Of a stretch of 64,000 nucleotides of DNA, positions 83-31,348 are shown piece by piece; position 1 is the stretch's first letter, and every line of letters begins with the position of its first letter. The translations under genes were made by a program, and so were the position numbers. A model generated the notes under the pieces. It saw nothing but the letters and a program-made list of their open reading frames with translations, searched no databases and was not told where the DNA came from. This stretch comes from Zancudomyces culisetae HAW-14-8 (Eukaryota; Fungi; Kickxellomycota), in assembly GCA_052426225.1 (NCBI GenBank), contig JBNJNM010000011.1, forward strand, positions 4,526,001 to 4,590,000, written 5' to 3'.

Positions 83-1636
83 TTAGTCTAAAAGAAGTTT
101 AAGCTCACGAAGTGCATTCAGTAATTCATGATCCACGTCAGCTGCAGGGGAAGCGGTAGAGCTTGTGTGGGTATTTGTGGTGAGTAGAGATGATTTAGAA
201 CGCGACAAAACATCCATACGGGATCTACTTCTTGCCAAGTTAAGCAACCCACCTGTTGGGGTACCTAGATTTGCTGAAGTGACTGGGGCGGGGGTGTTGA
301 ATAGACGTGACTGTGACCGCTCGGGGTGAATTCTGGACAGGGGGCGCCCAGGCAGAAACAGGGTTTGGTTTTCATTAGTATTACAGATGTTGTTTGTTGA
401 GTTGAGCTTTTCTTGAAGCATCTCGATCATTCGATCCACCAATTTGCGCGAGTTTTCTAGCTTAAAGCCGGTTAAATAGTCCGATGGAGAAGTAATTGTA
501 TCACCACTATTATTGTTTGCGGAGAAAGACTCGGTAGGATCATCGGGGATTGGCGCAAGCTTTGGGGTGATGACAGTAGGGCTTTGTGGACGCTTCGAGT
601 CCGTCATCATATACGTGGGCAGTAGTAACATTGGGGCTTTGCTGTTTACAGCCGATGTCTTATTACTATATGTGATCGGGGTGGCAAGGTTGGTTGTTGT
701 AGGTGTATCTTGTCCATGCAACGAATTACCAGGGTTCCTAGATGTAAAAATGTTGGCTGAACCAATATTGTGCACTGCTGCCACAGAGTAAGGTCTACCT
801 AACGAACCGCTGTTGCCTAATTTTCTTGTTGACGATGAAAAGCTAACATTCGCATTCAACATTTCATTTTTACCGCTTCCCATAGTTGAGGACGCCCGTA
901 GCTTGTTAAGCGATCCGCCTATTCTTGCATCGGGCTGAGTAGCAAGTTTGTCTGCGTTGGAATTGTCCCCGCTGAGATTACCTTTTCTAATACTCGGCAT
1001 ATTCTTTCCCGAATCACCAACATGAGTCAGTGTTGTATTCTTTGTACCAACACTTTTTACTGGCGATTCCTGACTCGTTCGAGAATCCAAAAAATGGACT
1101 GACCCTCTTTTTTGTAATGTCTGTGAAATCTTCAACCCACCGCCAGTATTATTTGCTGCTCTACCGAGAGACGTACCAGGTCGGTTTGCCATAGGCCCTA
1201 CACTTACTTCACGTGCCATTGAGGTTCCCGGCCTAGGTGGGAGTACGGCCGCCCTTCTGTTAAGTGGACCTGCTCTACTGAAATTTCCTCCAACCAAACC
1301 ATCCATCGATGTTTTTGGTCGTCCTACTGCTATATTCGTGTGGGGAGTAGGCTTTATTCCGACCTTTCCTAGCCCCCCATCCGCTATATTTCCCCTTAGT
1401 ACTGTTCTACTTTGCGGTCGCAGCACAGTAGCCTTGTTGATGGGCGGTGCCTTGTTCAGTGCCGTATTGACTCTTGGTTTCATTGTAGGCTTGTTGTTTG
1501 GACTATCTGTTTTAGTCCCGACCGCTGTACTGTTTGGTCTCACATACCCTCTTTGTATTTTTGCCTCTATTGCGCCATTTGTCCTTGACATCGGTTTATT
1601 TATTCCTATTTTTCCAGTATTTCCATTCGTTGTCAT
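83..1636 (-). CDS. Uncharacterised 517-aa basic, S/T/N/G/R-rich, largely disordered protein with repeated RPx[ST] motifs
   Basis: Long single ORF with ATG preceded by an A-run. Motifs RPNST, RPQSR, RPKTS, RPGTS (x2), RPYSV, RPQSP, RPLSR. Short helical C-terminus (ELLNALRELKLLLD). No family recognised. Confidence 0.75.
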   Translation of the reverse strand: MTTNGNTGKIGINKPMSRTNGAIEAKIQRGYVRPNSTAVGTKTDSPNNKPTMKPRVNTALNKAPPINKATVLRPQSRTVLRGNIADGGLGKVGIKPTPHTNIAVGRPKTSMDGLVGGNFSRAGPLNRRAAVLPPRPGTSMAREVSVGPMANRPGTSLGRAANNTGGGLKISQTLQKRGSVHFLDSRTSQESPVKSVGTKNTTLTHVGDSGKNMPSIRKGNLSGDNSNADKLATQPDARIGGSLNKLRASSTMGSGKNEMLNANVSFSSSTRKLGNSGSLGRPYSVAAVHNIGSANIFTSRNPGNSLHGQDTPTTTNLATPITYSNKTSAVNSKAPMLLLPTYMMTDSKRPQSPTVITPKLAPIPDDPTESFSANNNSGDTITSPSDYLTGFKLENSRKLVDRMIEMLQEKLNSTNNICNTNENQTLFLPGRPLSRIHPERSQSRLFNTPAPVTSANLGTPTGGLLNLARSRSRMDVLSRSKSSLLTTNTHTSSTASPAADVDHELLNALRELKLLLD

Positions 1637-4251
1637 TTTTTCCTTTTTTCTTAGGAGCTAACTTTTGTGAATATCTATTCGCGTGGACACCCCACTTCTG
1701 TTTCTTCTTTTCCTTTGTTAAAATCTAGCCTTTGAACATACAACCAATTGCTAGATTCATTTAATATGGTATACGTCCTATCTCACCAAAAAAAAGTAGA
1801 CCTGAGATGCTATACTTGTGTGGAGTTACTTTTGGTACAGATTACCTTTTGCAATTCACTAGGCTATGATCGAGTTTTTTTATTCCCCCACGATGTGCTG
1901 TTAAATCCCCAAACTATGCTATTTGATTTTACGTTGGGATAGAGCTGTATTTTTGTATATCAAGTTTATTTTAGTTTCGTTCCTAATCCTATTTTCTTTT
2001 CAGTAGTGTATTTCTCTATCACTTCGTAGCAGCTGGATCAATGGGAAAATTCACAAATATTTTTTGCTCTAAAAAATATATATTCTTGGTGCAAGCTGTT
2101 AGTCTTTTTATTTTTTTCCGTTTGCTCATGCTTTGCACCTAAAAAAAATGAAAACATATTATTGCTACTTGGTCCATAAAACAATTGGAAAAAACATAAA
2201 CCTGCATAGTTTATTTATTATGGTTCCTGTTTTATTTCTCGTGAATATTCTGATTTATGATTAATAGAACAGTTCCGCATAGTTTGGAGGAAAATTTTTT
2301 TCTGGAATGGGATAAATGCGAGGTGGATTTGAAGTTTGGCTCAACTTTTTAATTTTGATTTGCGAAAATGTTCCAAGTTATTGGAGGTGTATGCACCATT
2401 GGTTATTTTTTCGACCGAGTTTTTTTATTTTACCTACTCTGTCACGAAAACTATTTAGTATAACGCACATAACACTATTCTCGAAATAGACTGGTTACTA
2501 ATAGTTTAACCGCCAAGGCTTAGATGTACTATTACAACAATCGGCTCAAAGGCTACTAGCAATGTTGCTGATTATCAGTACGTTATGAATAATAATATAA
2601 ATAATATTTTCTCATTCAAGGCAGAAGGGTGTTTTTTTATAGTTGCTTTATCAGCAAATACACTGGCGCAAACTACCATTAATTTGAATTTTTAAAACTT
2701 AACTGGATACCATTTAATTATTTACTGTTAAAAGGAAGATGTAAGCACAAACATCTCACAGATAATAGAATACATCGTAATGATTCGCATAATTTAAAGT
2801 CTAGAGAGAGGATAAGTTTTCATGTACACGTACTATTCTATATCAAGTAGTTTTTTTTTGTGAGGATGGTGGTTCGTATTATTTTGTTTAGCATACATTT
2901 GACTCCACTTACATCTCATCCTAAAAAGATAACAAATAACAAAGTGTCTGGCGAAATAACGGATGAAATGCAAAAAGTTGGCAAAGCAAATTTCCGATAA
3001 AAAAACAGTAATTTTTTTAGGATAGGGGGGGGGGAAGAATAAACCATGACCTCGGTAAATAGTTTCTCTCCAATTATAGCTGTTTAGGTTTGCGCTTTTG
3101 GCTAAAGGTTGAGGCAAAAAAAGTAGTATACACTAAATATCTTATATCTTTAATACACTTTCTTTACACAGTTCCAACTATTTTGTGAGCACGTTATACA
3201 ATAAAAAAAAGAAAAACTCAATTTATTATTTTTTAATAGAGCGTGAAATAAGAAAGCTACAGATGTGATAATATTCATTAAAGGTAATATTCTCAAGCCT
3301 GATTACATTTTCAAAAACTTTAACAAATAATAAAATAATAGCAAAACATATGAGTATCGGTTATATTTCACAATTAAAGAGTTTGGTAACACTTTCACAA
3401 CAATAAATATCACTTTCATGGAATTTACCCGAAATATTCTCGCGATTAGAAGTTCCAAGCCAAAACTTTACCAAGTATTTGGATATGTACACATGATTGA
3501 ACAGGTCGGCGTTGGCAAAAAGAAATATAATTTGTTAAGCGTATAAAAGAAAGAAGCATATGGATGCCTCTGTTTGTATTTCATATATATCCAATATTCG
3601 CAAGCTAGAATAAAATTTAAAGCCATACTTTTTCAAATACACTCTACAAAGGACAACTAGTGGTTATTCTCATCTATTACTTTTCTTCCAAAGCGATGAG
3701 GTTTCAGTTGGATGAATTTACAAAAACATATTAAAAAGTGCGTGATTTAATATAAGACCCTTGGCGTCACTATTTTAGGGAAAATACCAAGGATAGATAA
3801 AAGCCCAAATATTTCACCACTCTCCCATATGTCATCATTTTATATAGCTGATATGGTACCAGCTAACCGGCTACAGAATTTAATAAGTAGTATTCTGCGT
3901 TATGTTGCTTTATTAAAGTAATACCGAAACAATACTCTACATTGAGTAAGATGAGTGTTTTGCATTTGCATTTAATGAAAATGAATTATATACCACAATA
4001 GTTACACGTATACAAATGGAGGGGGGTATGAGTTATGAGCTGTCTCTGATATAGAAGCAATAAAATATATACACGTTCCCCTAAAGTACTCATTTTGATT
4101 ATAAAAGGACGACATACACCCTTGACTCAATTCACTAAAAAATAAAAAGTATTGCGCAATTAGTGTTTGTATAACCGATACACAAATATTTTAACTTTTG
4201 CTAAAGATACTGAATAAAGTTAGGTATTGGAATCTGTATACTCAGATAAAA

Positions 4252-6569: not shown

Positions 6570-8901
6570 TTTTTAGTTTAATAGTGTATCAATCAATAGA
6601 ATGTGTATTTAAAAAGTATATAATAACAGGTGGAAACGCTTAATGGGTAGATCTTAGTATTTGAAAATACAAACTCTTAGTATCAAGGAATACTCAAACG
6701 TACTTATATAAGATTTTCCTTGTAAAACCCAAATTAGGCTTTACTTAAAACGTTTTCATACGGAGTATTTGATCACTTTTATGGTTAAATCTAACATCAA
6801 CTACCAAACAAAATGCTATCTTCATTCGGTTGTTAGTTTTGGTTTACAACATGAATGCATTATAATCTTACATTCATTTCTGGTCTATCCAAGACCTCTC
6901 TTGCTTTGCTGCTATCAGGTTTTATATTTGCTGACTAACAATACCTCTCCATTGTTTTAAATCACTAACTGCGTGCAAAGATATGTTTGATTGTTTTCAT
7001 ATTCCTTTATCAAAAAAGTTTGTAACGGCTTTGTACATTTGTGAGGGGGAGGAGAAGCGGAGAAAAATTAAAGGGAACATCTCTTCTTACCAATATAGTC
7101 TCCAACCTATATATCTATGTTGTGGATGTTATTGTCGAAATGCTGCGAATATATGAATTGCAACTCGGAGAATGTACCAACAAAAACTAATTGATATTTT
7201 CCGAATTTTTTTTAATATAGTATGTCAGTTATATTTTCTACACGTTTTTTGTAAGTATTAATCGTAAAAGCCCCGCTTTTTCTTAATAGAAATCTCAAAA
7301 ACCCGGTTTCATAATGTTTATGTTAAACTCATTGTAGTGAAGTGATTAATTCTTTGCGAATTCGTAAAATCCACTCCTTCCTTCCCTTAAAAAGCACGCG
7401 GGGGTGCATTGCACAACAATGGTGTTTGTTTTTAGTTCATCAACAAACAAGCAAGCTCAATAGTATAAAAATAACATACTTTTTTTATTTGGTTCAAAAT
7501 ATACATTTGCTTGCTTCCATAGTATTGTTAGCTAAAAGAAGGATATGTAAAATTTCATAAATAAACAAATGCATCATGAAAATAATTCGAAGGCCCTTCA
7601 CACCAATTATTTTTTTAAATAAAAAAAAACAAAAGCTACAAACACAGAGTCTAGTCATATTGTAGCTATGCTGTATATATCAAGCTTACAAAGCTTTTGC
7701 AGTTTCTATGTGATATTCGAATTAATGTACTGGCACCAAGCCAATGAAAGCGTTTATTCAAAACACAGTTATTGCCTAAGGAAATATATTTCTTTCCTAA
7801 TACCACCTGTTAAAGATTATTCCACATATTGCAAGGTAATTCAGAGTGGTGATTGTTAGTTTTAAATTGTAAAAATTTACTCTAAACACAACAGATGTAA
7901 GCTTTTAACTTCAACACGGATATAGAAAGGAGGATTTTGGCATGCAAATATTGGTAGACCAGGGGCGGGAGAAGAGCGAAAAAAAGGAGAAGAGGGAGGG
8001 GGGGGGGTTAGTAAAAATGAGAGAAGGTTGTTTGGTGCATTATTCCTGGAAACATTCTGCCATTTATTTATGCTCTGTATTTTACATAGTTATGGAATCC
8101 ATCTTCAGGAATAAAATTTCCTTGTAAAGTTTTATTTTTTATATATTTGAAAGATGGTAGGTGGAGATAATTTTGCGAGAGTGTCGGGTGGAGGGGATTT
8201 ACCACATCGACTTCAATGTATTTGAAAATATACATCCTTCGGAGTTGAAGAGGGCGAAATATAGGTAAAATGGGCTTTATAAAAAAAAAGAATTTTCGTC
8301 ATGCAACATAATCTCTTCACCAAGATTAGCATTCAGCTATTATAAAAAGGTCATGGTGAATACATATACTTTTATTAGGGTTTGTTAGTACTCGTATTTT
8401 TGATAATTTGAGTAGGTTATTTTGATTTCAGCTTATAACTACAGTTGGTTAGACATATGAAGAAAAGAAACAGATAAACACCAAAATACAAATAATGTTA
8501 AAGGGAGCCCAATACGCATATACTCAGTGGGTTTTGGCTGTTTTTTTAATTTTAGAATTAACTGGGGCTAAGTGTACTCAATGGGATTTGAAATTTCGCT
8601 CATGTTTATTTTTGCCCAAATTAATAGCTGATGCAAACAATTGTAAAAAGTCAACAACAATGACAAAATGCATTGTCTAAAAAAATTTGTATCGAGTTAT
8701 TTGTAGAACGTTTAATTCTTTATGGCATGCACTTGGCTTTGAACAATTAAATTACCATTATTAGTTGATGATATTATTTTTGTTATGAATATGACTATGA
8801 TTATTCTTATGCTTATTATCACACTCAAGATTTTCAAGAGCAATTAGCCAAATAATAGTTACTCTTGAATGTGGTTAATCTTGGAGAGGCTAGTACATTT
8901 G

Positions 8902-8930
8902 CACTATTCTGCACTATTCTGCACTATTCT
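8902..8930. repeat. 10-bp tandem repeat CACTATTCTG x3
   Basis: Read directly, in the long region upstream of the chitin synthase. Confidence 0.8.
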
Positions 8931-10048
8931 GTTCATTATCCTATTTTTTAGTTAGCCTACCATAGGCTTCAATATGTTTATGTTTGCAAGAAATGTAAAA
9001 ATTTGGAGTAACACGAAAGGGGAAAATAATTGAGGATTTTTCCCGTTCAAGTTGACGAATAAATGAAATCCGCGCTATGCCCGCTTAAGCAATACTCACT
9101 CCCCGACAATTCTTTCATTTGTTATAATTGCCATTTCTGCTATAACAATTACCATTTACAATCAAAAACCACAAGAACTAAGCATATAATTTAAACATTC
9201 TAAATAGCAAGTAAGTAGCAAGCTTCTGAATGTCATAATCAGAACCAGCAATGCCAAAGTTTAACCGTATTTTTGCTCTTTTCTAAAATAAATATGATCG
9301 TTGCATATTGAGGGAAGAAAACTTTGTTTATCCGAAAGTCGCTTTATTAAACTAATATATAGTTAATGAATAGTTAATATTTGCTTGACTTCACATACGC
9401 ATAATAATATATTACCTTTTTTTTTGCACTTGAGGGAACGGAACACTTTAAAACTCTGGAGTTGTAGAGAATAAGGTAGGTATAGAATACAGTTTAATAC
9501 AAAGGCATCTTTGTACAACATAACACTCAGGACTGGAGAAAGATATTTTAAAAAAATCTTTAACAGCAGCACACCCTAAAGAAGTTTAAAACGGTGTATT
9601 AATAAGAATTGAGAAGTATTAGGGAATATTAAGTTTTGTATAAAAGTAATTAATATCACAGTATTCGCTATACTATGTTCAATATTGAGTATTAAAGCAA
9701 AAATAAGTTATTGAGAAGATGTGAAGTATTAATAGGGCAACATACGCCCTATTAAAAACGTTAATAAAAAGCGAAACTTTTATTGAACACAAAATAAGTG
9801 TGGTTGTGAAATAAGTAGGGTTAGATTTATTTTATGCTGGGATTGATATGTAAAGAAAAAAATATAAGGCACTAGAACTGCTACTAGTTACTCAAAAGAC
9901 TAGAAATTGTGACAAAACCTGTATCTACAGAGCATTAATGTAAATATAGGTCTCAAAAGCTTAGCATTGTAAACACGCGAGTATAACACAAGTATCCATT
10001 CGAGACAAGAAAAGTAAATGCTGTTACAAACAAAAACAACAAAGAGAG

Positions 10049-13000
10049 ATGAGTACAGATAACGGATTTACGAGTTACGGTAAGCAGAAGCTGGATACGA
10101 TTAGGGGTTGTCGTTTGTTTGCGCCCGCTTGATAAGTTGTATTGAAAAAAGCCCTTTTAATAAATACAAAAAATTCTATTAGGTCGTGAGTATGAGGAGG
10201 AATACGAGAAACTTCAACAAAGCAGAAAAGGTAAAAATATAACCAAGTATAATAAACTAAAAAGAAAAAAAACGCTAGACCTTTCGGTCTAATTGCATAT
10301 GTGAATGAAACGCCCCGTATAGTGCGTTTTCTATAGCCAAGAGTTATATGAACGACAAATGCTAATATATCCAAACTTTTTTGTAACCCAAAACAAAATA
10401 AACAGTAAAAATAGAGCAAAACGACTTGTCAGAACAAAAAAAGGCACATGTTCGTGAGGCGAAGCAAAGGCAAAGGATAGGTGGGCGACGTAAAGAGGAT
10501 TTTTATAATGGAGCACAAGCGCTGAATAGCGGGAATATAGAGGAAAATATATTTTTAGAATTTAACAAAGGCAGAAGAAGTAGCAAGCGAAGATTAGATA
10601 GCAAGAAAAGTGGAAAGGATGGAGCGGAAAAAAAGAGTATTAGTAAATGGATGATTTTCTGCCAAGTACTAACGTTTTGGGCACCAAACAGGCTGTTAAA
10701 GTCACTAGGATTTCATAGTACTGATAGTATAAACGCCTGGCGGGAAAAAATAGGCCTAGTATTTATAATATTACTATTGTGCTCAGTAGTGGCATTCTTA
10801 ACATTTGGGCTTCAAAGTGTATTATGTAAAGAAGAAAATCGGATAAAATACAACGAAATACGAGAGAGTGAGGTGATTATAAATGGATATGCATTTGATT
10901 TGGCAAGTTTTGGGCATCCAGCATCTAAATCAACAGGACCAGATATGGCAAGTTTACTTGGAGCACCGGTATCTGGAGGAATGACAGACATGTCACTGCT
11001 TTTTCAAAATACAAACGATCCGCAATGTCAAAAAGTATTTGATTACAGTCCTGGGTTTGCGGATGCTGACGGAAATGTGGTAAGCGTAATGCCATGTAAG
11101 ATTGTAAAGATAAATGAACAAGATCCTCCAAAACAAGTAGCAAAGAAAGCAGAAGATGCTGAAACACTTGCAGCATGCCACAACACTGTACTTTCCCGGA
11201 AGGTACTGAAAATCTTAAAAAAACGACCAGTGTACTATTCATGGCAGGATGTTGAAAGTGTTCCTGGGAGAGTGGTATTCAACGGTGCGGTGTTAGATTT
11301 AAATAGATTCAATTGGCTCAGACCAGAGGTGCAACTTACCAACGTTACTGAAGATCTGGGTGCAAATAAGGATATTTCTTTACACTTGCTATCAACAAAT
11401 AGAAGAAATGTCGGCTTGTGTCTACAAAGGCTATTTACAATAGGATATGTGGATACGTTATCAATCGGATGCATTACCTCCAATACGTTGCTATATATGT
11501 CGCTGCTTGTAATTCTTGGAGCAGTTTTTGCAAAATTTTTCATGTCGGTGTACTTCGGATGGTTTTTAGGAAGAAAATTGGGAAATTTTGGAAATAATAT
11601 TACTAAAGAGCAATTAAAGGAAAGGCAGAGAGAGATTGAAACATGGGCTGACATAAACAACCACTATGGGGGAAATGGGTTTGGCACTCAGGCTGGACAA
11701 AGGTTTCCAACACCATTGGGTACTACTACATCTGAGCGCACAAATGTAGAATTCAGTGGAAATCTACAGGACAGAAATTCTAGAAATTACTATCAAAACA
11801 GTGAGAATGGGTCTGCAATTATTGCAAAAAAATCAGGCTATATACTAAAAGATCAGCCCTCAGCTCCGGATGGCCTTTCTACTGGTGAATACAAAAATAA
11901 AGTGGAAGACCTTCATAGAAACACAGTATATGACCACCGATATTCTGAGAAAGAAAGAGCAAACGTAGAATTAGAATTTAATTTCGAGCTGATGAACGTG
12001 TTTTTACTTGTAACATGCTACTCAGAGGGCGCACATGGAATAAGAACAACGCTGGATTCATTGGTAGCGACATCATATCCAGCAACACACAAATGTCTCA
12101 TTGTTATATGCGATGGAATTATCAAGGGCTCTGGTGAAACCAATACAACGCCAGATATATGTGTTTCTATGATGACTGATTTTTTAGTAAGCCCACATAA
12201 TGTTACTGAAAGTACATATGTAGCAATAGCTGAAGGATCAAAGAGACACAACATGGCAAAACTGTATGCAGGATATTATTTACCAAGTAAGGATTCCCCA
12301 GAGGCTGCAAAGAAAACTCGATGCCCAATGATTGTAGTTGTAAAGTGTGGAACCCCTGAAGAAGAGGGTAGCAAAAAGCCAGGAAATAGAGGAAAGAGAG
12401 ACAGTCAAGTGATACTAATGAGCTTTTTGCAAAGAGTCATATTTGACGAACGGATGACAATGTTAGAGTACCAGCTATTTAACGCAGTGTGGAGTCTAAC
12501 AGGTATAACAGCTGACAATTTTGAAGTGGTATTGATGGTTGATGCCGATACAAAAGTGTACCCAGATTCATTGGCACATATGGTGGCAGCCATGAGAAAA
12601 GATCCTATGGTTATGGGCCTGTGTGGCGAGACAAAAATAGCAAACAAAAGCGATTCTCTAACATCCATGATCCAGGTCTTTGAATATTATATTTCGCATC
12701 ATCAATCCAAGGCATTTGAATCGGTGTTTGGCGGTGTTACATGTCTACCTGGGTGCTTTTGCATGTACAGAATAAAATCGATGAAGGGAAAAAATGGATT
12801 CTGGGTTCCCATCTTGGCCAATCCAGATATTGTAGAAAACTATTCAGAAAATGTGGTAGATACACTGCACAAGAAAAACTTGTTACTACTGGGTGAGGAC
12901 AGATACCTGACTACATTAATGCTGAAGACATTTCCCAAAAGAAAAATGATGTTTGTCCCAGCAGCAGTATGCAAAACCATAGTTCCAGATGAATTTAAAG

Positions 13001-14298
13001 TATTACTATCTCAGCGTAGGCGGTGGATAAACTCCACAGTACACAACCTATTTGAACTAGTCTTGGTTAATGACTTGTGCGGAACATTCTGTTTTTCGAT
13101 GCAGTTCATCATATTTATGGAACTTGTTGGAACGCTGGTCCTTCCTGCAGCAATATCGTTTACTATATATTTAATAGTTATCTCCTTTTTTGTAAATCCA
13201 GTTCCGTGGATTCCGCTATTTTTGTTAGCCGCTATATTAGGACTACCAGCAGTACTCATAGGGCTCACAACCAAAAAAGTGGTATATATAGGATGGATGC
13301 TTGTATATCTAGCATCGCTGGTAATATGGAATTTTGTATTACCAGTATACGCTTACTGGCATTTTGATGATTTTAGCTGGGGCGAAACAAGAAAAGTGGA
13401 AGGAGAAACCAGCAAACAGAAATCAGGAGGTCACATAGGTGGAGGAGAAGGTGATACAGGACTGGACCATTCAAAGATAGTTATGAAAAGGTGGTGTGAC
13501 TTTTTGGCAGAAAAGAAAGCTCAACTAACCGAGATTTTAGAAAAAGAACATAAGCAGGGAAAAAAGAATAAAAGCACAAGTACCTCCGAAGAAAAGACTG
13601 TAGCTATAGCTATAATGGATATGTTGGCCGCAGAAAGGCATAAAACAATGGTGATAAACAGCAATCATTCAAGTTTGGAAAACTATAGCGAAGTGTATGA
13701 GGAAAACGAGGTGTGTATCAGCAAGATGCGAGATATGGCCCTTTATACTAGTAACGAAGCAGTGAAAAGGGGCATAGAACAAATTGAACATTTGGGATAT
13801 TATCCGCCACATGTGGTATGGAGAAGCATAATAGACGCCAGTACATACAGCTTAAGAGAGGAGCTATTGGGAGGCAACAGAAGTGGATCATTATCAGCAA
13901 ACCTAGCGCCTATCCAACACAGAATGAGCATGGATGTTGGTTTGGGAGGCAAAAAAGTGCTAAGGCCAATAACACCGAAATCAGTGTACAGCTACGAGGG
14001 ATCACCTATTGGGTCAGGCTACCAAAACAGCAACACCAGCGTGCATGGATTTGGAAGTGGAAATGGAAGCGGAAATGGAAGCGGAAACGCGAGTGGTAGT
14101 GAATACAAGAAAAGCAACAACAACTATCTAAATACAAAGAGCCGGAGAAGCCTATTTACACAATCAAAAATGTACACACGACTTCAGATAAAAGAGCGAA
14201 TGCATGATATGCAAGAGTTGGAGATTCAGCAGCAAAGAAAAGGAAATACTGGTGGTCGAACCAAGTCGGAGTATTTCGCAGGAGCCTCACAGCTCTAG
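10049..14298 (+). CDS. CHS3: Chitin synthase, class IV (Chs3-like, GT2); exons 10049-10079, 10183-10230, then from 10406/10415/10433 to 14298
   Basis: Motifs AWREK, a cytochrome-b5-like region, TCYSEG, KPGNRGKRDSQ, MVDADT, LPGCF, LLGEDRYL, SQRRRWINST, WHFDDFSWG. The ORF-track start is a TTG. The upstream ATG exon (donor GTAAGC) and a 48-nt phase-1 exon (TTAG/GTAAAA) splice in frame. Confidence 0.95.
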
Positions 14299-21976: not shown

Positions 21977-23455
21977 TTCTTTGAATGGTATGATAACTGT
22001 AATATTTGTATTTCAGGTGGTTGACTATCCTTTTTTTGATTCTAACCTTGCTCGACACTGCTAGCTCTTTTATATTACTAACACGGATTTTTTTTTTGGT
22101 TTTTAACTGCCTCAAGATGGATATGCTATCCTTCTAAAATATTTGATAGAGTATTGATGTTGATTTTGCTGCGTTTTTAGCTCGGAGTTCAATCCTATAT
22201 GTTGAAATATTCGGATGTGTGGTGAGTGAAGGGAGCAAACTACGCACATTTTATTTTAAAACATTAAAGGAAACGAATATGAATATGAATATGGAGAAAA
22301 ATCGATGTGAAAATTACCCATACAAAAATGCATTTTGTTGAGTATCACATGTACTAAGTGTTACAGGAGCTATGATGAACATTACAATAGATTATATAAT
22401 TGTTGTTTCAGTTGTTGTTTAGTGGATATAGCAGACTGCTAAACCTTTAATAGTATTTTTTTAAAATATAAATATGCGAATTCATAAAACAAGCATTATG
22501 CAAATAGCCCTGCGCTTCTTTTTAAACATGAATTGCCAGCTGCTGGGTAGATATAAAATATAGGACTTGGTGAGTCTATATATGGAATTTAAAGTTCAAC
22601 TCGTTTTACCTTTTTGTTTTTTTTTCTATCATTGGGTTGTGGTAGGAGGCCAGAGTTGAATGCTTGAACGTCCTGAGTTAGGATATTGATGAATATACCC
22701 GCATTTTAAACATCAGTATCAACGATGAATTCTACACCTTGCCTTAAAAAGCTAAAAAGCTTTGACCAGTGCAAAATACACTTTATAGGCAGGGAGGGGT
22801 ATCGAGACACAATTTCTCTTTTCTTTTTTCTTTTTTTTAAAAAAAGGCGCTGGAATCGAGACTGGATATTCTAGTTCACGTATTTATCCCTCATACCATT
22901 TTTTTCTTTTTGGCCATAGTGTTCAGTATCGATAAGAAAATTAACAATGCGACTATTGTATATAGAGATTTCATATATCAAGAATTCGACAAACAGATTC
23001 AGTGATATACTACCAATCCCATAAGTATGTGAACTAAGATGTCGTGCAAAAAAAAAAGATTTTTCCAAAGCAGGTAGATATCAGTATTTGATTTGAATTA
23101 TGTGAATAACATAGCTAATTTTAACCATAATTTGTAAACTGTATTGACCAGTAAAAACAAATAACATAATTGTATCCATATTTCGACCATCCATAGATTG
23201 TTTCTGTATTTACAAGCAACCTTTATTAGAAAAATAAAATAAAAGTATTTGGTTGAAAAAATAAAGTAAACAAAGCACATAAACTTCTCAAGGGCGTAAC
23301 ACAAAAAAATTAAACGCTGAATTAGTCTCTTTGTAGATTATTCATCGCGAAATATATTAAATTAACAGTATAGTAATTAATAAACCAAATAATTTAAGCG
23401 GCAAGAGTTGATATATTTAAAATCCGAGATACAAACAACAGCCAATGTATACAAA

Positions 23456-24799
23456 ATGGAGATTCAGGATATTGAATTCAAGGTAATCAGAAAAAGAAAG
23501 GATTTTGCCTCAGAAACAGATGAAAATCAACAGATCCAACTTGCGACACGAAAGCCACGAGTCAGCAACCTGAAATGGGACACAATAAACAAACTTGGTC
23601 AGCTCAATGGCGGAATCGAGAATATAGTAGAATTTAAAAGTAGAAATCAAGACAGCAAAGTAGAAACCTCGGCAGCAGCAATCAATCAAGCCGAAGAAAA
23701 CAGGGCGGACAAAGGTGGCGCTGTAGAACAGGCGGTGAAAAATGTAAATTCATCTGTAACTCTAGAGAAAAAAAGTGGAACTGGAAGCAAAAATATACAT
23801 GGAATATTAAAAAACAAAGGTAGTAGCAACAACACTAATAATAACAACAGTAACATTAAGCGCAAAAGCGAAATAGAAAACGAGATAGTAGAAAGGAATA
23901 GCAAGGATACAAAGAGAATAAACAACACTAATCAGCTCTATGTTGAGGAGAGAAAAGAAAACAGCGAACGCGAACGCGAGGCAGCAAACAGGCGGAGAAA
24001 ATCCAGTTTGGGTACTCGAGGGATGCGGGCTAGTCAGATCGGCAATGGATATGTCGCAATGCCACATGCCAGCGTGTCGCCCGGGATGTATTACCGGCAT
24101 ATTTCTTCATCGCTGCCCGAACCACACCGACTGAAAATCCTGCTGTACTGGGCAATCAACCGGGCAGACCCGCCAAAACTCAGCAGGTCCCTGGTTAGTA
24201 CAAACACCAAGCTTGCACACCAGCTACAACGGTGTATGGATAGTATGGTTAAAGATATCGGTTGGAGCATCCAACATGGTGGTATGAACACCAGTTGGTA
24301 TAACCGCAAGGATCCCGCAGATTCCCAGCGGGCAGAGGCGGCGCGCCATCCTACAAACACATTCAACAGCTTCCGGAAAAATGTATTGATGGAGCAAATT
24401 GTAGCGCTGCGAAGCGAAGAACAGACATGGTCTAAAGTTGCCAATAGTGTCACACACACCTCTGAAGGCCTTACTCACCGACCTCCTTCCTCTTCCTCTT
24501 CCTCGTCCAGCGCTGCCTTCAGTTTTGATGCGTTTGTCAAATCGCGCGGCTTTTCCTCCTACTCTGATTTCTGCTCAAGCATAAACTCCATCGCCGAAAA
24601 TACCGAACGCTTTGTGGCTAAGCACAACTCAATCGCCACTACTTCCGCCGCACAGTTGGCTGCTGCAGTGTCATCCTATAATCACGCATCTATGACTTTA
24701 CGAACGTTGCTAAGTCCCAAACGTAGCCCCGCCGATCCACGGGATCTCTTAGTAAATCTTTCACGCAGCTTGGCAATGCCTAGCAAAACTCCAGCTTAG
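23456..24799 (+). CDS. DSN1: Kinetochore Mis12-complex subunit Mis13/DSN1
   Basis: Signature RRKSSLGTRGMRASQIGNG..MPHASV....YYRHISSSLPEPHRLKILLYW, then SWYNR and HPTN. First in-frame ATG at 23456 (the ORF track starts at TTG 23408). Confidence 0.85.
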   Translation: MEIQDIEFKVIRKRKDFASETDENQQIQLATRKPRVSNLKWDTINKLGQLNGGIENIVEFKSRNQDSKVETSAAAINQAEENRADKGGAVEQAVKNVNSSVTLEKKSGTGSKNIHGILKNKGSSNNTNNNNSNIKRKSEIENEIVERNSKDTKRINNTNQLYVEERKENSEREREAANRRRKSSLGTRGMRASQIGNGYVAMPHASVSPGMYYRHISSSLPEPHRLKILLYWAINRADPPKLSRSLVSTNTKLAHQLQRCMDSMVKDIGWSIQHGGMNTSWYNRKDPADSQRAEAARHPTNTFNSFRKNVLMEQIVALRSEEQTWSKVANSVTHTSEGLTHRPPSSSSSSSSAAFSFDAFVKSRGFSSYSDFCSSINSIAENTERFVAKHNSIATTSAAQLAAAVSSYNHASMTLRTLLSPKRSPADPRDLLVNLSRSLAMPSKTPA

Positions 24800-26897
24800 T
24801 CGGAAGGTTGTAGTTGGTCACTGCCCGTTCCAAATTCTGTCGTAACGCTTTATTTGCCAGCGGTGATAGAATCGCGATTGGCCTTTTTTTGATTGTTGGA
24901 ATCGGTGTAGTTTTTGTTAAATAGTTTGTTTTCTTCTTTCTGGTTATATTCAACCCCTCTATCTTTATAGAACCCTCTTTTTCCTTTTCTTTCTCCCTTT
25001 CTTTTGCTTTTATTTTACCTTTTCTTTCTTTGGGATTATCTATTTTTTCATGTACTAAACTTTGCACTTCTAAATCACATTCACCTTTTCCTTCTTCACT
25101 CTTCTGCTTCTCCTCGCCTCCTATTTCCACCCCCATCTGCTCTTTCTCAGCCTCCTTCACTTTCTCTTCCTCTTGCTGCTGTTTGAGCGCCAGCCGCGTA
25201 CTTCTTCTAGGTTGAATCCTGCTAATATCCCTACTCTTATTATTTTTCTCTGGTTTTGGCTTACCCTCAGAATCCACATTACTCACCTTTTTCAATATTC
25301 CTTTGAGAACAGCCATATTATTGCCATCGCCTAGAATTCCTGCTCCATTTCCGAGTGCTTTGCTGCTGCTATTCACCAAACTTCCAGCCTTTGCCCCTCT
25401 TTTCACCGGTGTGATTGTTGGTGACTTCTTGTCAAAAAGCTCCGGACTTAGTGGCGGGCCAAACCGAACCTTTCGTCTCTTGTTCTTTTTATTTGAGCCT
25501 ACACCTTGCTGTTTCCCATTACCCTCCCCCTCTTCTACATTCTCTTCCATATCGCCACCATCAGTATTGATGGTACTGTCATTAGAATTCGGTGTAGTAT
25601 TGGTCAGCAACCCTGAATTTCTTCTCGCTCTCTTTTTGGCTCTAGTTGGCTCCGGTGTATTTTTTCCCTCTTGTACTCTTATGTCATCAACTCCATTCTT
25701 CTCACCCATCTCTTTCTCCTTATTTTCTTTGTCCACCTCCATGTCTATCCTTTCCATTTCATTTTGTTCTACATCTTTAGCTCGCTGTTGAATAAATTTA
25801 TTTTTTCCCTTTTTCGATGTAGCTATTGCCGCTCGTTTAAAAACATCATCACTGACAAATACCGAAAAATATTCCTGTGGTCGCTCCAATAACTGCTTGA
25901 TTTGTCTCTCCACAAACATTTCCGCTGAATTCCGATATAATTCACGCTTAGTCCCCATGTTTCGTAGCGTTCGGCGTGATGTTTCTGTATCTGAGCCTAT
26001 TTCTCCATACTCTATTCCATCCACCCACATATCCATATCTATGTCTACATTTGTATCTTTTAGTCCTCTCCTTGTCACCATGCGTCTCCTTTTTCTCTTA
26101 ATCTCCTCTTTTCCATACTCTATTTTCATATTCCCCGGTAATGACTTGCTTTTACCGCGCCTTGTCTTTACCATTCCACAATCCGCCCTTTCTTCTCCAT
26201 TCACAGGCTCTTGTAGATTCATCTCTTGAGTATGTAGTCTACTGCTCGAATACAACCTGTCATTTATACTTTTTTCCATTGCTGAAATATCCGGTACATT
26301 CTTTTCCGTTCCGTGCTTTTCCTCTTTTCGCTCAAGCTCGGGATTACTTTCATATCTAAACTTTCTGCTACCTACCTGAATTATCATTCCATTCTTCACC
26401 TCAGCATCGCATATTTCTACCTTCTCCTCTACCTTTGGTACACTCTTCGCTCTTCCCTTTCTTTTTCTGCCTTTTTTCCCCTTACCTCCCTTTCCAATAC
26501 TGTTTTTTCCCGCTTCCTCCAAATCTATTTTACTTTCTGTTTCTCCTTCATTTCCAACCCTTTCTATGATTGATCTTTTCAGAGCCAATCCATCCAGGAT
26601 TGTTTCATGCTCTCCAACGCTCCTAATTCTGATCCCCTTATTCTTATCCACATATAGTACGCATTGCTGCTTTGACACTCCCTCGACCTTGACTTGAATA
26701 TGATTAAAGACATCGCTCCCAATACTACAAATTTTGTTTTCCAGACGAAACACAATCTTTGAATCCTCACCAGTTTTTTTCAATATTACCAATTGTCCAT
26801 ATCTGCCAATATTTGGTGTTATCTGTAGTGCACTACCCAATCTCTCCAATTCTCCTTCCTTGTTCAGGTTACTAGCACTAATTTCCATTTTATCCAT
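24780..26897 (-). CDS. Ki-67-like protein: N-terminal Ki-67-type FHA domain plus Ki-67/RepoMan PP1-binding motif; highly charged disordered remainder
   Basis: GQLVILKKTGED...FRL...CSIG......IQV.V.GVSKQQC...VKNGMIIQVGSRKFRYE parallels human Ki-67 RLVTIKRSGVD..FPL..CLFGR...IRIQLPVVSKQHC...LKHGDVITIIDRSFRYE. KRRKVRFGPPLSPELFDKKSPTITPVKRG parallels Ki-67 KRRRVSFGGHLRPELFDENLPPNTPLKRG (recalled sequences). Confidence 0.8.
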   Translation of the reverse strand: MDKMEISASNLNKEGELERLGSALQITPNIGRYGQLVILKKTGEDSKIVFRLENKICSIGSDVFNHIQVKVEGVSKQQCVLYVDKNKGIRIRSVGEHETILDGLALKRSIIERVGNEGETESKIDLEEAGKNSIGKGGKGKKGRKRKGRAKSVPKVEEKVEICDAEVKNGMIIQVGSRKFRYESNPELERKEEKHGTEKNVPDISAMEKSINDRLYSSSRLHTQEMNLQEPVNGEERADCGMVKTRRGKSKSLPGNMKIEYGKEEIKRKRRRMVTRRGLKDTNVDIDMDMWVDGIEYGEIGSDTETSRRTLRNMGTKRELYRNSAEMFVERQIKQLLERPQEYFSVFVSDDVFKRAAIATSKKGKNKFIQQRAKDVEQNEMERIDMEVDKENKEKEMGEKNGVDDIRVQEGKNTPEPTRAKKRARRNSGLLTNTTPNSNDSTINTDGGDMEENVEEGEGNGKQQGVGSNKKNKRRKVRFGPPLSPELFDKKSPTITPVKRGAKAGSLVNSSSKALGNGAGILGDGNNMAVLKGILKKVSNVDSEGKPKPEKNNKSRDISRIQPRRSTRLALKQQQEEEKVKEAEKEQMGVEIGGEEKQKSEEGKGECDLEVQSLVHEKIDNPKERKGKIKAKEREKEKEKEGSIKIEGLNITRKKKTNYLTKTTPIPTIKKRPIAILSPLANKALRQNLERAVTNYNLPTKLEFC

Positions 26898-28696: not shown

Positions 28697-30166
28697 TTAG
28701 AGTATATACCTAAAGCTTGGATGGAAATCATGCATAGCTCTTTGTTCTTCAGGAGTCAAGTGAGATACGTCTTGGGGATGCGCTTCCCGCTGTTTGTTTG
28801 CCTTGTTGAGTGCAAACGCAAGTGTTAGTGCTACTACAATTGAAAGAGCATACAATCCAAAAGCAAGTGAATATCCAGCGATGTACTTTGGTGCAGTTGC
28901 AGTGGTGAACAAATACGGGACAGCAAGACCAACAACATTACCAACCATTGCAAATACCGCAGACATCAACGCACGCTTTTGAGTGCTACCAGCATTTACT
29001 GACATCCAACTTGTAGCTATTGGGAAAATAGCATAGACTGGGATTCCTAGAGCAAACATAAAGACGAGTCGTACGACATTATTAGTGGAAAACGCAACTA
29101 CTGCAAAGAAAGCGGCTGTTATGATATCGGCACCTACAATTCGAATCCAGTATGGGACTTTTTGGAATACAAATGCAAATGTAATTGTACTACAAGTACC
29201 AATTGCTGACACAACTGCAAACAGGAATGTAGCTTCAGATCTTGAAAATCCAAACGATTTTATAATGGTTGGACCAATAAGCCCCAAAATCAGCAAGGAG
29301 GCGGTTCTGGACAAGTTAAGAATGGCAAACGCCCACACCTTCCAGTCGAGGATAGTTTCGAGAATAGATTTAAATGTGACATGGGACCTTTCGGCACTTC
29401 CCTGACTAGCATTAATTCTCTTTATAACAAGAGCTTTTTCTTTTTCTGAAAAGAATTTTGCGTGTTCAGGATAGTCTTTAATCAAAAATATTGCAGCAAT
29501 CGAGATGACCAGTGTTATTGTTCCACCAAAGATAAAAATGGACTGGTAGGCTATCAGTTTGCCAACTTTTATTGAGGCGAATGCTCCATACAGCAGATTG
29601 ACAATTCCTGAGCCTGGGTGCGCTGAAAACATGATGGACATTCGCGAACCTAGATCCTCTCTGGTGTACCAGTATGCCAAGTATGTGATCATTCCTGGTG
29701 TGAATCCTGCTTCAAAGATACCCAAAAGCAGTCTGATAATTACTGCCTGTGTTGCATTTGTTACTGCTGCCATACACATGCATGTGATTGACCACGATAT
29801 TCCAATAAATGGAAACCAGAATGATGGGCGGGTTTTTTTCAAGATTATATTGGCAAATGGTTCCATAGCAATGTATGTGGTGAAAAACAGAGAGTTAATA
29901 TTTCCTTGATCTGTTGATGTCAGATCTAATTTCTCTATTATTCCATTGATCAATGCCGCACCCATGTTATATCTATCCATTGCTCCCGCAAGGTACATGA
30001 GGTACATAATCGGCAATACTCTGATGTCAATCTTTCTTATTGCCTTTTTTAGCACGGACACCTCCTCTTGAGTAAATTCGAGACCCTTATTCACCTCACG
30101 TCTTTCTTTTTCTCTGCCATGGCTATCCTCAACCTCAATACCCACGGTTTTCTCAAGATCACTCAT
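28697..30166 (-). CDS. MFS transporter, anion:cation symporter (Dal5/Tna1-like) family
   Basis: RKIDIRVLP, DRYNMG, RLLLGIFEAGFTPG, WYTREDLGSR, FIFGG, DYPEHAKF; about 12 hydrophobic helices; C-terminal D.HPSFRY. ATG at 30166. Confidence 0.92.
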   Translation of the reverse strand: MSDLEKTVGIEVEDSHGREKERREVNKGLEFTQEEVSVLKKAIRKIDIRVLPIMYLMYLAGAMDRYNMGAALINGIIEKLDLTSTDQGNINSLFFTTYIAMEPFANIILKKTRPSFWFPFIGISWSITCMCMAAVTNATQAVIIRLLLGIFEAGFTPGMITYLAYWYTREDLGSRMSIMFSAHPGSGIVNLLYGAFASIKVGKLIAYQSIFIFGGTITLVISIAAIFLIKDYPEHAKFFSEKEKALVIKRINASQGSAERSHVTFKSILETILDWKVWAFAILNLSRTASLLILGLIGPTIIKSFGFSRSEATFLFAVVSAIGTCSTITFAFVFQKVPYWIRIVGADIITAAFFAVVAFSTNNVVRLVFMFALGIPVYAIFPIATSWMSVNAGSTQKRALMSAVFAMVGNVVGLAVPYLFTTATAPKYIAGYSLAFGLYALSIVVALTLAFALNKANKQREAHPQDVSHLTPEEQRAMHDFHPSFRYIL

Positions 30167-31348
30167 TTTGTTTTTTTGGTATATAAAAGCCACTAAGGGT
30201 GTTGGTGGTGGTTATTTGAGATTCTAGCTCCTTCTGTTTCTGTTTCTTGAGTGAGATCAATGAAAAACCTTGTGAGGAGAAAGTTTGGTCCTATTTATAA
30301 TGTTTTGTGGTTTATTAATCAATATTCTTTCAAATCCAGTATCTGCCTATGAAAGTTTATTGTCCCGCACGTGTACTACGTTGTGTTAAGGCTAAATGAT
30401 GCCCGAATTCAAAAGGTATGCATTTGGTCTGTGATTTCGACAATAAAAAAAATTTTTTTGATAAAAAATTTTTTAGCGAAATTATTGATCGTGTGAAAAT
30501 TTAGGAATGTGTATTTTGGTTACCTAACATTAAGCAACAAAAAAACCCAACTTTGATAAATATTTAGTTATTTGAACTTCTGTTTTCCCCGACCCTATTA
30601 TTGGCCCAGTTGAAATAACTGAGCTTGATGGGACTTCCTTAAAAATTATTCCGTAGATATTTTTATCCCGATGCTGTGTGGTACATATTTTTGTAACCTC
30701 CACCCATAATTGTTGTTCGAAATTTAGTCCATGTAAAATTAGATTGATTTTTGCTAACTAAAAAATAATTAAATGTATAATTTTAGCCAATAAAAAACAA
30801 TAAATAGAAACATGCTCAAATACTGCAACATCTCTGGCTGTGATTAAAGATAATGATGGTGATAAGAAAAACTAGTATTGTTAGATTCTCCTGACCTTTC
30901 CTTGTTTTTTAATTTTATTTTGCATAATGGGTTTTATATGTAAATGTAATATAACTACTAAAATTATCTCAATAATATCTATCTAGCCAATCCCTTTCCG
31001 CTTATCGAAGCACCCTACACTCACCCGGTATTAGCTCGGAAAGCTGTTCCTGCTTCAGGTTGGTCCGAAGTGATCATCCTGTTGTGGAATTCTAACAAAG
31101 AATCTCATTGTGTTCAGTCCAATTAATCGATAATCGCTTTTGGTTTTTCAGAATTATTTCGAACTATAATTATGACATAAAGCCATATTTCTGTCACCAG
31201 CTGATGCAACAGCTTATAGTATTCGCTTCGGAAAAATAAGTGATGAAGATTGAGAACAAATGACAAGTAAAAAAAATGCACAAGGATATTTATTTAATTC
31301 CTGAATCTAGACAAAACAACGAAAAAAAAGAATTACAAAAAAAATAAA

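Follow-up and report, generated by a model that had tools for sequence, protein, structure and literature searches.

The genome of the mosquito-gut fungus Zancudomyces culisetae (Harpellales) contains a single-copy gene of the Ki-67/RepoMan family. This gene lies on the minus strand of the stretch analysed here, a 64,000-nucleotide window of strain HAW-14-8 (assembly GCA_052426225.1, contig JBNJNM010000011.1, positions 4,526,001 to 4,590,000), and is the one PP1_bind locus found in the genome. The reading we favour, at a probability of about 0.85, is that of a single Ki-67/RepoMan-family gene encoding a targeting subunit for a Glc7-type protein phosphatase 1 (PP1). The protein is very probably a PP1 adaptor, its actual binding to PP1 and the regulation of that binding being predicted from motifs and from docking in silico. 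On sequence criteria it is a genuine Ki-67-family gene, homologous to animal Ki-67 and orthologous to the Smittium proteins that combine an FHA domain with PP1_bind. A preliminary description of the window had proposed a fungal Ki-67 from an FHA domain and a PP1-docking motif, a proposal that is supported by the positive outcome for both defining modules; the reading frame is likewise as it had given it. The gene and the elements of its PP1-binding module are the following (coordinates are those of the window).

24780-26897, minus strand: whole coding sequence of the Ki-67-family protein, from the open-reading-frame list; 705 amino acids plus stop, ATG start, apparently intron-less
25392-25481, minus strand: PP1_bind domain (Pfam PP1_bind), residues 473-502, with the string RVxF...PELFD...TP.KRG
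25461-25472, minus strand: RVxF docking motif in the form KVRF, residues 476-479
25395-25436, minus strand: KiR-SLiM-like stretch, residues 488-501 (motif definition in PMC5005033)
25290-25301, minus strand: canonical PP1 motif of the SILK type in the form GILK, 58 residues past the RVxF (residues 533-536)

Residues 473-502 match the Pfam PP1_bind model at 34.3 bits (cut-off 27, E 2.7e-8), at exactly the coordinates from which the preliminary description had reported the motif, and residues 471-502 align without a gap to the crystallised PP1-binding peptides of RepoMan (5inb, 5ioh) and Ki-67 (5j28). Sequence matches of the PP1 motif in the PDB are RepoMan and Ki-67 PP1 peptides only. From the KiR-SLiM consensus, F-D-x-x-L-P-[PA]-N-[TS]-P-L-[RK]-[RK]-G (PMC5005033), the Zancudomyces stretch retains F, D, P, T, P, K, R and G and has Leu changed to Val. 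Its F488 corresponds to RepoMan F404 (RepoMan numbering as in PMC5005033), the most buried residue in the solved complexes. Two CDK1 sites are retained, namely S484 (equivalent to RepoMan S400) and T496 (RepoMan T412), and the third is lost, K503 standing in the place of RepoMan T419.

The x-position of the RVxF, which in Ki-67 and RepoMan is a Ser/Thr phosphorylated by Aurora B, is occupied in Zancudomyces by R478. In 78 of 88 motif-bearing family members this residue is Ser, and Arg is found in five Kickxellomycotina only; because the position is Arg, no Aurora-type switch should be possible. The SILK motif of PP1 regulators, defined as G/S-I/V-L-K (PMC9813921), is placed at different distances past the RVxF in different members, as SILK at 42 or 43 residues in Smittium, as SILR at 36 or 41 in Mycoemilia and as GILK at 58 in Zancudomyces. 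Several animal Ki-67 proteins (five cited, from fish or unnamed) carry S[IV]L[KR] 35-53 residues past the RVxF, which suggests that contact through a SILK-type motif may be among the older elements of the Ki-67 PP1-binding domain and have been overlooked. When [GS][IV]L[KR] was counted at 20 to 90 residues past the RVxF, 11 of the 88 family members were found to have it, against a chance expectation of about one; the occurrences fall 35-58 residues past the RVxF, and all five Kickxellomycotina are included. The unrelated regulators RRP1B and Inhibitor-2 also place [GS][IV]L[KR] in the PP1 SILK pocket besides an RVxF, in RRP1B with the SILK-type motif C-terminal to the RVxF as in Zancudomyces (PMC9813921), whereas both lack the KiR-type stretch and the FHA.

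A possible partner is at hand, since the genome encodes one Glc7-type PP1, plus two longer PP1-like genes. The Glc7-type gene is located on contig C14 (446671-449787, with an intron at about 1615-1691 of that stretch, minus strand); the intron is 77 nt long, 24% GC, phase-1, positioned after codon 19 and of the form GTAAGT...ATAG. The encoded PP1 reads V-R-G-S-R-P-G-K, with Arg at the equivalent of residue 20, a PP1-gamma/beta-specific position, and this Arg is the residue by which Ki-67 and RepoMan select PP1-gamma (PMC5005033). Exon 2 of the PP1 gene (694-1614, minus strand, the 19-aa first exon being omitted) was modelled in complex with residues 462-540 of the Ki-67-family protein, a prediction that the preliminary description had proposed. 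The complex scored 0.77 in three of three runs and the best of three controls 0.00; 51 of 78 solved complexes and 2 of 108 mismatched pairs attain the 0.77 mark. This pass is to be read as likeness and not as binding. Contact agreement between runs was at least 48% and the partner's predicted local distance difference test (pLDDT) value at least 47. Confident PP1 contacts are made by residues 475-483, 485-490 and 531-536; in human numbering (offset +18), the modelled RVxF contacts PP1 residues 242-243, 261 and 288-293, and the Ile and Leu of GILK contact residues 54-56 and 116-117. These last two segments would fit the SILK-pocket region.

The second defining module, the FHA domain, is divided by an insertion:

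26574-26807, minus strand: N-terminal part of the FHA (Ki-67 subtype), residues 31-108; GS stands in place of GR, SKQQ in place of SxxH and His in place of the beta6-beta7 Asn
26409-26573, minus strand: 55-aa insertion in the FHA, residues 109-163, predicted to form a disordered loop and containing a basic patch rich in Gly, Lys and Arg
26340-26408, minus strand: C-terminal part of the FHA, residues 164-186, with the family signature R-x-F-R-[FY]-E at its end

This segment, whose RKFRYE ending had been recognised in the preliminary description, scores 20.7 bits with Pfam FHA over residues 58-108, exactly at the cut-off. In a comparison of the N-terminal 200 residues with PDB sequences, two Ki-67 FHA entries were the only matches (E 0.03), each aligned as two pieces with the insertion between them; the S. 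culicis orthologue, which has no insertion, matches the Ki-67 FHA entries along the whole domain at 1e-7, compared with 0.24 for the next FHA family. Word-based homologue searches reached Smittium proteins only and an exhaustive profile search was needed, in which three Harpellales FHAs were compared with 1.84 billion representatives and 583 proteins were recovered at E<=1e-3. Among the best 151 of these 583, long proteins whose FHA occupies the extreme N-terminus predominate, and 82 of the 151 carry the motif K[RK]V[ST]FG..LSPE.FD downstream; named matches include fish Ki-67, tunicate and sponge 'Ki-67-like' proteins and fungal proteins. A chance RVxF in a generic FHA protein was considered and rejected on this co-occurrence, together with the PP1_bind score above cut-off and the matches to RepoMan and Ki-67 peptides.

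Other comparisons of the domain point in the same direction. With a profile of 39 Ki-67 FHAs that contains no Harpellales sequence, the Zancudomyces protein obtains 58.6 bits over model positions 2-106, and the other strong FHA of the genome, that of a Chk2-type FHA-kinase lacking both end signatures, 39.4 bits. The AlphaFold2 (AF2) model of residues 25-195 has a pLDDT of 81.7 (95-98 in the core), and the top Foldseek match of this model in the PDB is the Ki-67 FHA 2aff (E 1.6e-6, TMt 0.86). In the FHA tree the Zancudomyces protein groups with Smittium at a support of 99/98, the deeper nodes lacking resolution. By PDB match, profile and fold, which answer the clustering check set beforehand, the FHA is of the Ki-67 subtype and does not cluster with unrelated FHA families.

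The residues by which FHA domains bind phosphothreonine have nevertheless largely been replaced. In a 43-sequence alignment of family FHAs, the Arg of GR is present in 37, the His of SxxH in 39 and the beta6-beta7 Asn in 32. The four Harpellales FHAs have Ser in place of the Arg and H, Q, Q or Y in place of the Asn, and Zancudomyces alone also has Gln for the SxxH His, DG for NG and NGM for HGD. Of the phosphothreonine-binding set it keeps the Ser only (Arg to Ser, His to Gln, Asn to His). All canonical residues are retained in the FHAs of Mycoemilia, Mortierellomycota, Jimgerdemannia, Chytriomyces, sponge and fish, and canonical GR, SxxH and N-G-T in the Chk2/Cds1-type FHA-kinase of the same genome. 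This kinase gene is on contig C13 (144940-148203), in open reading frames 1372-2103 and 2198-2698 (plus strand) that are split by a short intron. The loss of Arg, Asn and His indicates that the FHA of Zancudomyces is probably a phospho-independent interaction or structural module, and it would therefore probably not work like the human Ki-67 FHA.

Proteins with FHA and PP1_bind, both above the Pfam cut-offs, are present in S. culicis, S. simulii, Mycoemilia, Lunasporangiospora and Chytriomyces, and, judged by motif, also in S. mucronatum, Mortierella claussenii and Jimgerdemannia. The preliminary description had allowed that early-fungal homologues may already be annotated, and this is the case. 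Three GenBank proteins bear the name 'antigen identified by monoclonal antibody Ki-67' (Mycoemilia scoparia KAJ1919110.1, Lunasporangiospora selenospora KAF9584874.1 and Mortierella claussenii KAI1314732.1), and Ki-67-like proteins have been described in fungi including Mycoemilia scoparia (Kickxellales), Malassezia globosa and Paramicrosporidium (preprint 10.64898/2026.06.18.733134, June 2026). The same preprint found no Ki-67-like protein in budding and fission yeast, gives tandem repeats (typical of vertebrates, and thus no strict hallmark of the family) as a feature of most but not all Ki-67 homologues, and reports cell experiments on human, Ciona and Drosophila proteins, not on fungal ones. 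Because the family is widely distributed in fungi and animals, an ancestral opisthokont origin fits. Both the family assignment and this inference agree with the current literature; the kind of gene is already known, and the novelty is a modest one of lineage detail (FHA losses, the 55-aa basic loop, KVRF and the downstream SILK).

With vertebrate Ki-67 (MKI67) the Zancudomyces protein has in common an N-terminal FHA of the subtype ending in R-x-F-R-[FY]-E, a downstream PP1_bind (RVxF, PELFD, TP.KRG), a basic, charged low-complexity body and a PP1 partner with Arg at position 20. It differs in size (705 aa versus 3256 aa; PMC5005033), in being without the 122-aa repeats and a recognisable LR domain, in having an FHA without the phosphothreonine-binding Arg, Asn and His and with a 55-aa loop, and in the RVxF x-position, which is Arg instead of an Aurora-B-targeted Ser; moreover, a canonical SILK is added and S/T-P sites are few. 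Fungal Ki-67-like proteins share FHA and PP1_bind, and those of Mycoemilia and Smittium share also the KVRF/LVRF form and the SILK/SILR motif. Non-Harpellales fungal homologues, in contrast, have an FHA with GR, SxxH and N-x-T intact and extend over 1.2-2.6 kb of protein; none of the copies is as short or as derived as that of Zancudomyces, which was absent from the protein sets searched. RepoMan (CDCA2) has a near-identical PP1-binding module, with two of its three CDK sites kept in Zancudomyces (the S400 and T412 equivalents), and is compact and without tandem repeats. However, it has no FHA domain and shows no likeness beyond the module of about 40 residues, and because an FHA is present, the architecture of the Zancudomyces protein is of the Ki-67 type and not of the RepoMan type. 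Since both proteins are compact and repeat-less, a role as a plain PP1-to-chromatin adaptor is plausible by analogy.

The reading frame is unbroken over 2.1 kb, with seven more open codons upstream, and its GC content is 0.41 versus 0.29 in the upstream DNA. No credible combination of splice signals was found in the coding sequence. A stretch of about 84 nt just past the SILK motif (GTGAGT...CCTAG, 25209-25296, minus strand) is in frame and formally a possible intron; its composition is that of coding sequence and a clear branch point was not seen. The frame of a convergent MIS13/DSN1 kinetochore gene overlaps the 3' end of the Ki-67-family coding sequence by 20 nt. The same convergent pair occurs in Smittium simulii with a spacing of about 570 bp (8001-11348 and 11919-13770 of the extracted S. 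simulii stretch), and this common neighbour supports orthology within Harpellales. The gene seems to have been unannotated so far. In the 2017 assembly (GCA_001969505.1), contig LSSK01001097.1 encodes a protein identical to the product of the HSP70 reading frame of the window, and PMC5954228 assigns LSSK00000000 to Zancudomyces culisetae. This contig ends inside an MFS transporter gene (28697-30193), at about 29732; because it stops short of the Ki-67-like gene, the latter would have to be on a different contig of the older assembly or in one of its gaps. The neighbour and the remaining features of the protein are:

23408-24799, plus strand: MIS13/DSN1 kinetochore gene, convergent neighbour, Pfam MIS13 97.5 bits, context only
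26082-26099, minus strand: basic cluster KRKRRR, residues 267-272, recognised by composition and resembling a nuclear localisation signal, function putative
25965-26027, minus strand: acidic motif W..EYG..GS[DE]TE.SR.TL, residues 291-311, common to S. culicis and S. mucronatum only
24783-25277, minus strand: C-terminal K/E-rich basic tail, residues 541-705, net charge +11, isoelectric point (pI) 9.6, putative chromatin-binding role

The whole protein has a pI of 9.55, a net charge of +33 and 37% charged residues (K 13.2%, E 11.6%, R 7.7%). Of the K/E/R-rich disordered body reported earlier, the K/E/R richness is thus borne out, and the disorder is read from composition, because the full-length AF2 model (3-sequence alignment, mean pLDDT 36.7, the FHA itself unrecovered) is too shallow to be informative on this point. 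In the 705 residues, tandem repeats were not detected beyond a low-complexity run that is short and KE-rich, so that the description of the protein as compact and repeat-less holds. A search of the middle region (residues 187-470) in the ESM Atlas gave no usable match, and towards the C-terminus there is a basic tail only, with no detectable sequence similarity to an LR-type domain. This tail is much shorter than that of the Smittium proteins, which are 1074-1179 aa long. A likeness to Smittium in C-terminal SPL..K and L[DE]R..NY motifs was discarded, having its basis in a gappy alignment and receiving no confirmation from BLAST.

Three other explanations have to be weighed against that of a PP1-targeting subunit. 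The protein could be a true functional Ki-67, i.e., an organiser or surfactant of the perichromosomal layer of mitotic chromosomes that brings PP1 at mitotic exit. The Ki-67 domain order (N-terminal FHA, PP1_bind downstream, basic body) and the status of sole family member in the genome speak for it, and adjacency to the kinetochore gene MIS13 is at most suggestive. We nevertheless consider it unlikely, given a length far below that of human Ki-67, the absence of repeats and of a detectable LR-type domain, and the loss of the phospho-binding residues of the FHA. Furthermore, the many S/T-P sites noted in the preliminary description were overstated: there are eight in 705 aa (one per 88 aa), three of them within the PP1 motif, and a single full CDK consensus (TPVK). 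Their spacing is inside the 8-128 aa range among the Ki-67 family (preprint 10.64898/2026.06.18.733134), but eight sites are too few for reversal of a net charge of +33, which makes a CDK-driven charge reversal implausible. The 55-aa insertion, for its part, might be an unspliced in-frame intron, in which case the real FHA would be ordinary and compact. It is found in Zancudomyces only, is missing from the 42 other family FHAs aligned and is placed exactly between two strands, where it is modelled as a low-confidence loop (pLDDT about 50-73), and in S. simulii a small intron is annotated at another place within the FHA. Yet its GC content of 0.40 is like that of coding sequence, compared with 0.24 in the PP1 intron and 0.29 in intergenic DNA, its purine content is 0.81, and no set of splice signals (5' site, branch point, 3' site) fits together there, while introns known in this genome and in S. 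simulii are 57-77 nt long, AT-rich and start with GTAAGT or GTAAAT. The insertion is for these reasons read as very probably coding, and its interpretation as an intron is very unlikely.

Several observations weigh against the favoured PP1-targeting subunit as well, beginning with the few S/T-P sites just mentioned. The exact 705-aa protein is not in a collection of 15 billion proteins and no earlier gene model supports the gene; no chromatin-binding domain is detectable by sequence. In the complex model the peptide's own pLDDT is about 50, and the pass may reflect the structure predictor's knowledge of the Ki-67/RepoMan:PP1 complexes already solved. The protein ends about 400 residues before its Smittium orthologues, its terminal branch in the FHA tree is 1.54 versus 0.2-0.6 for Smittium, and its FHA is degenerate, all of which could reflect relaxed constraint. 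This leads to the idea of a decaying gene, a relic on the way to the loss known from budding and fission yeasts. In addition to the truncation and the absence from earlier protein sets, it would account for the longest branch within Harpellales and for the most derived FHA of the 43 compared, in which Arg, His and Asn are missing and NG and HGD are changed. However, the 2.1-kb frame is intact in an AT-rich genome, the PP1 module is almost letter-perfect with its SILK motif retained, the FHA core still folds confidently in the AF2 model, and synteny is conserved. Decay is thus very unlikely, and a conserved PP1-targeting subunit remains the preferred explanation.

As a PP1-targeting subunit, the protein would act through its putatively disordered segment 473-536, which may wrap PP1 by means of the RVxF (KVRF), the PELF/KiR-SLiM-like stretch and the downstream SILK (GILK). 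The holoenzyme would in turn be anchored on a nuclear polyanion (chromatin or nucleolar RNA) by the rest of the protein, which is basic and charged, CDK phosphorylation at S484 and T496 would probably tune PP1 binding, and the FHA would keep the Ki-67 fold and act as a phospho-independent interaction or structural module. Localisation to the nucleus or to chromatin is likewise putative, as is any part in mitosis.

A further-reaching and tentative proposal, which we regard as possible but hold with some reserve, is that the Ki-67 family has been rewired in Kickxellomycotina, most extremely in Zancudomyces, and that the recurrent SILK-like motif is an overlooked ancestral part of PP1 binding. 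If so, RV[ST]F would have been changed to a non-phosphorylatable KVRF backed by SILK, giving a PP1 holoenzyme that is tighter and controlled by CDK alone, the FHA of Harpellales would have stopped reading phosphothreonine, and a basic loop would have been added in Zancudomyces. In that case the 705-aa protein would represent a natural 'minimal Ki-67' and show which ancestral functions survive without repeats, a phospho-reading FHA and Aurora control. Ki-67 has long been seen as vertebrate-only, and work from 2026 extends it to invertebrates and fungi, to which this gene adds a small member from an insect-gut fungus. It represents no new kind of system; its phospho-blind FHA and its KVRF plus SILK offer concrete hypotheses on which parts of Ki-67 may be ancestral or essential.

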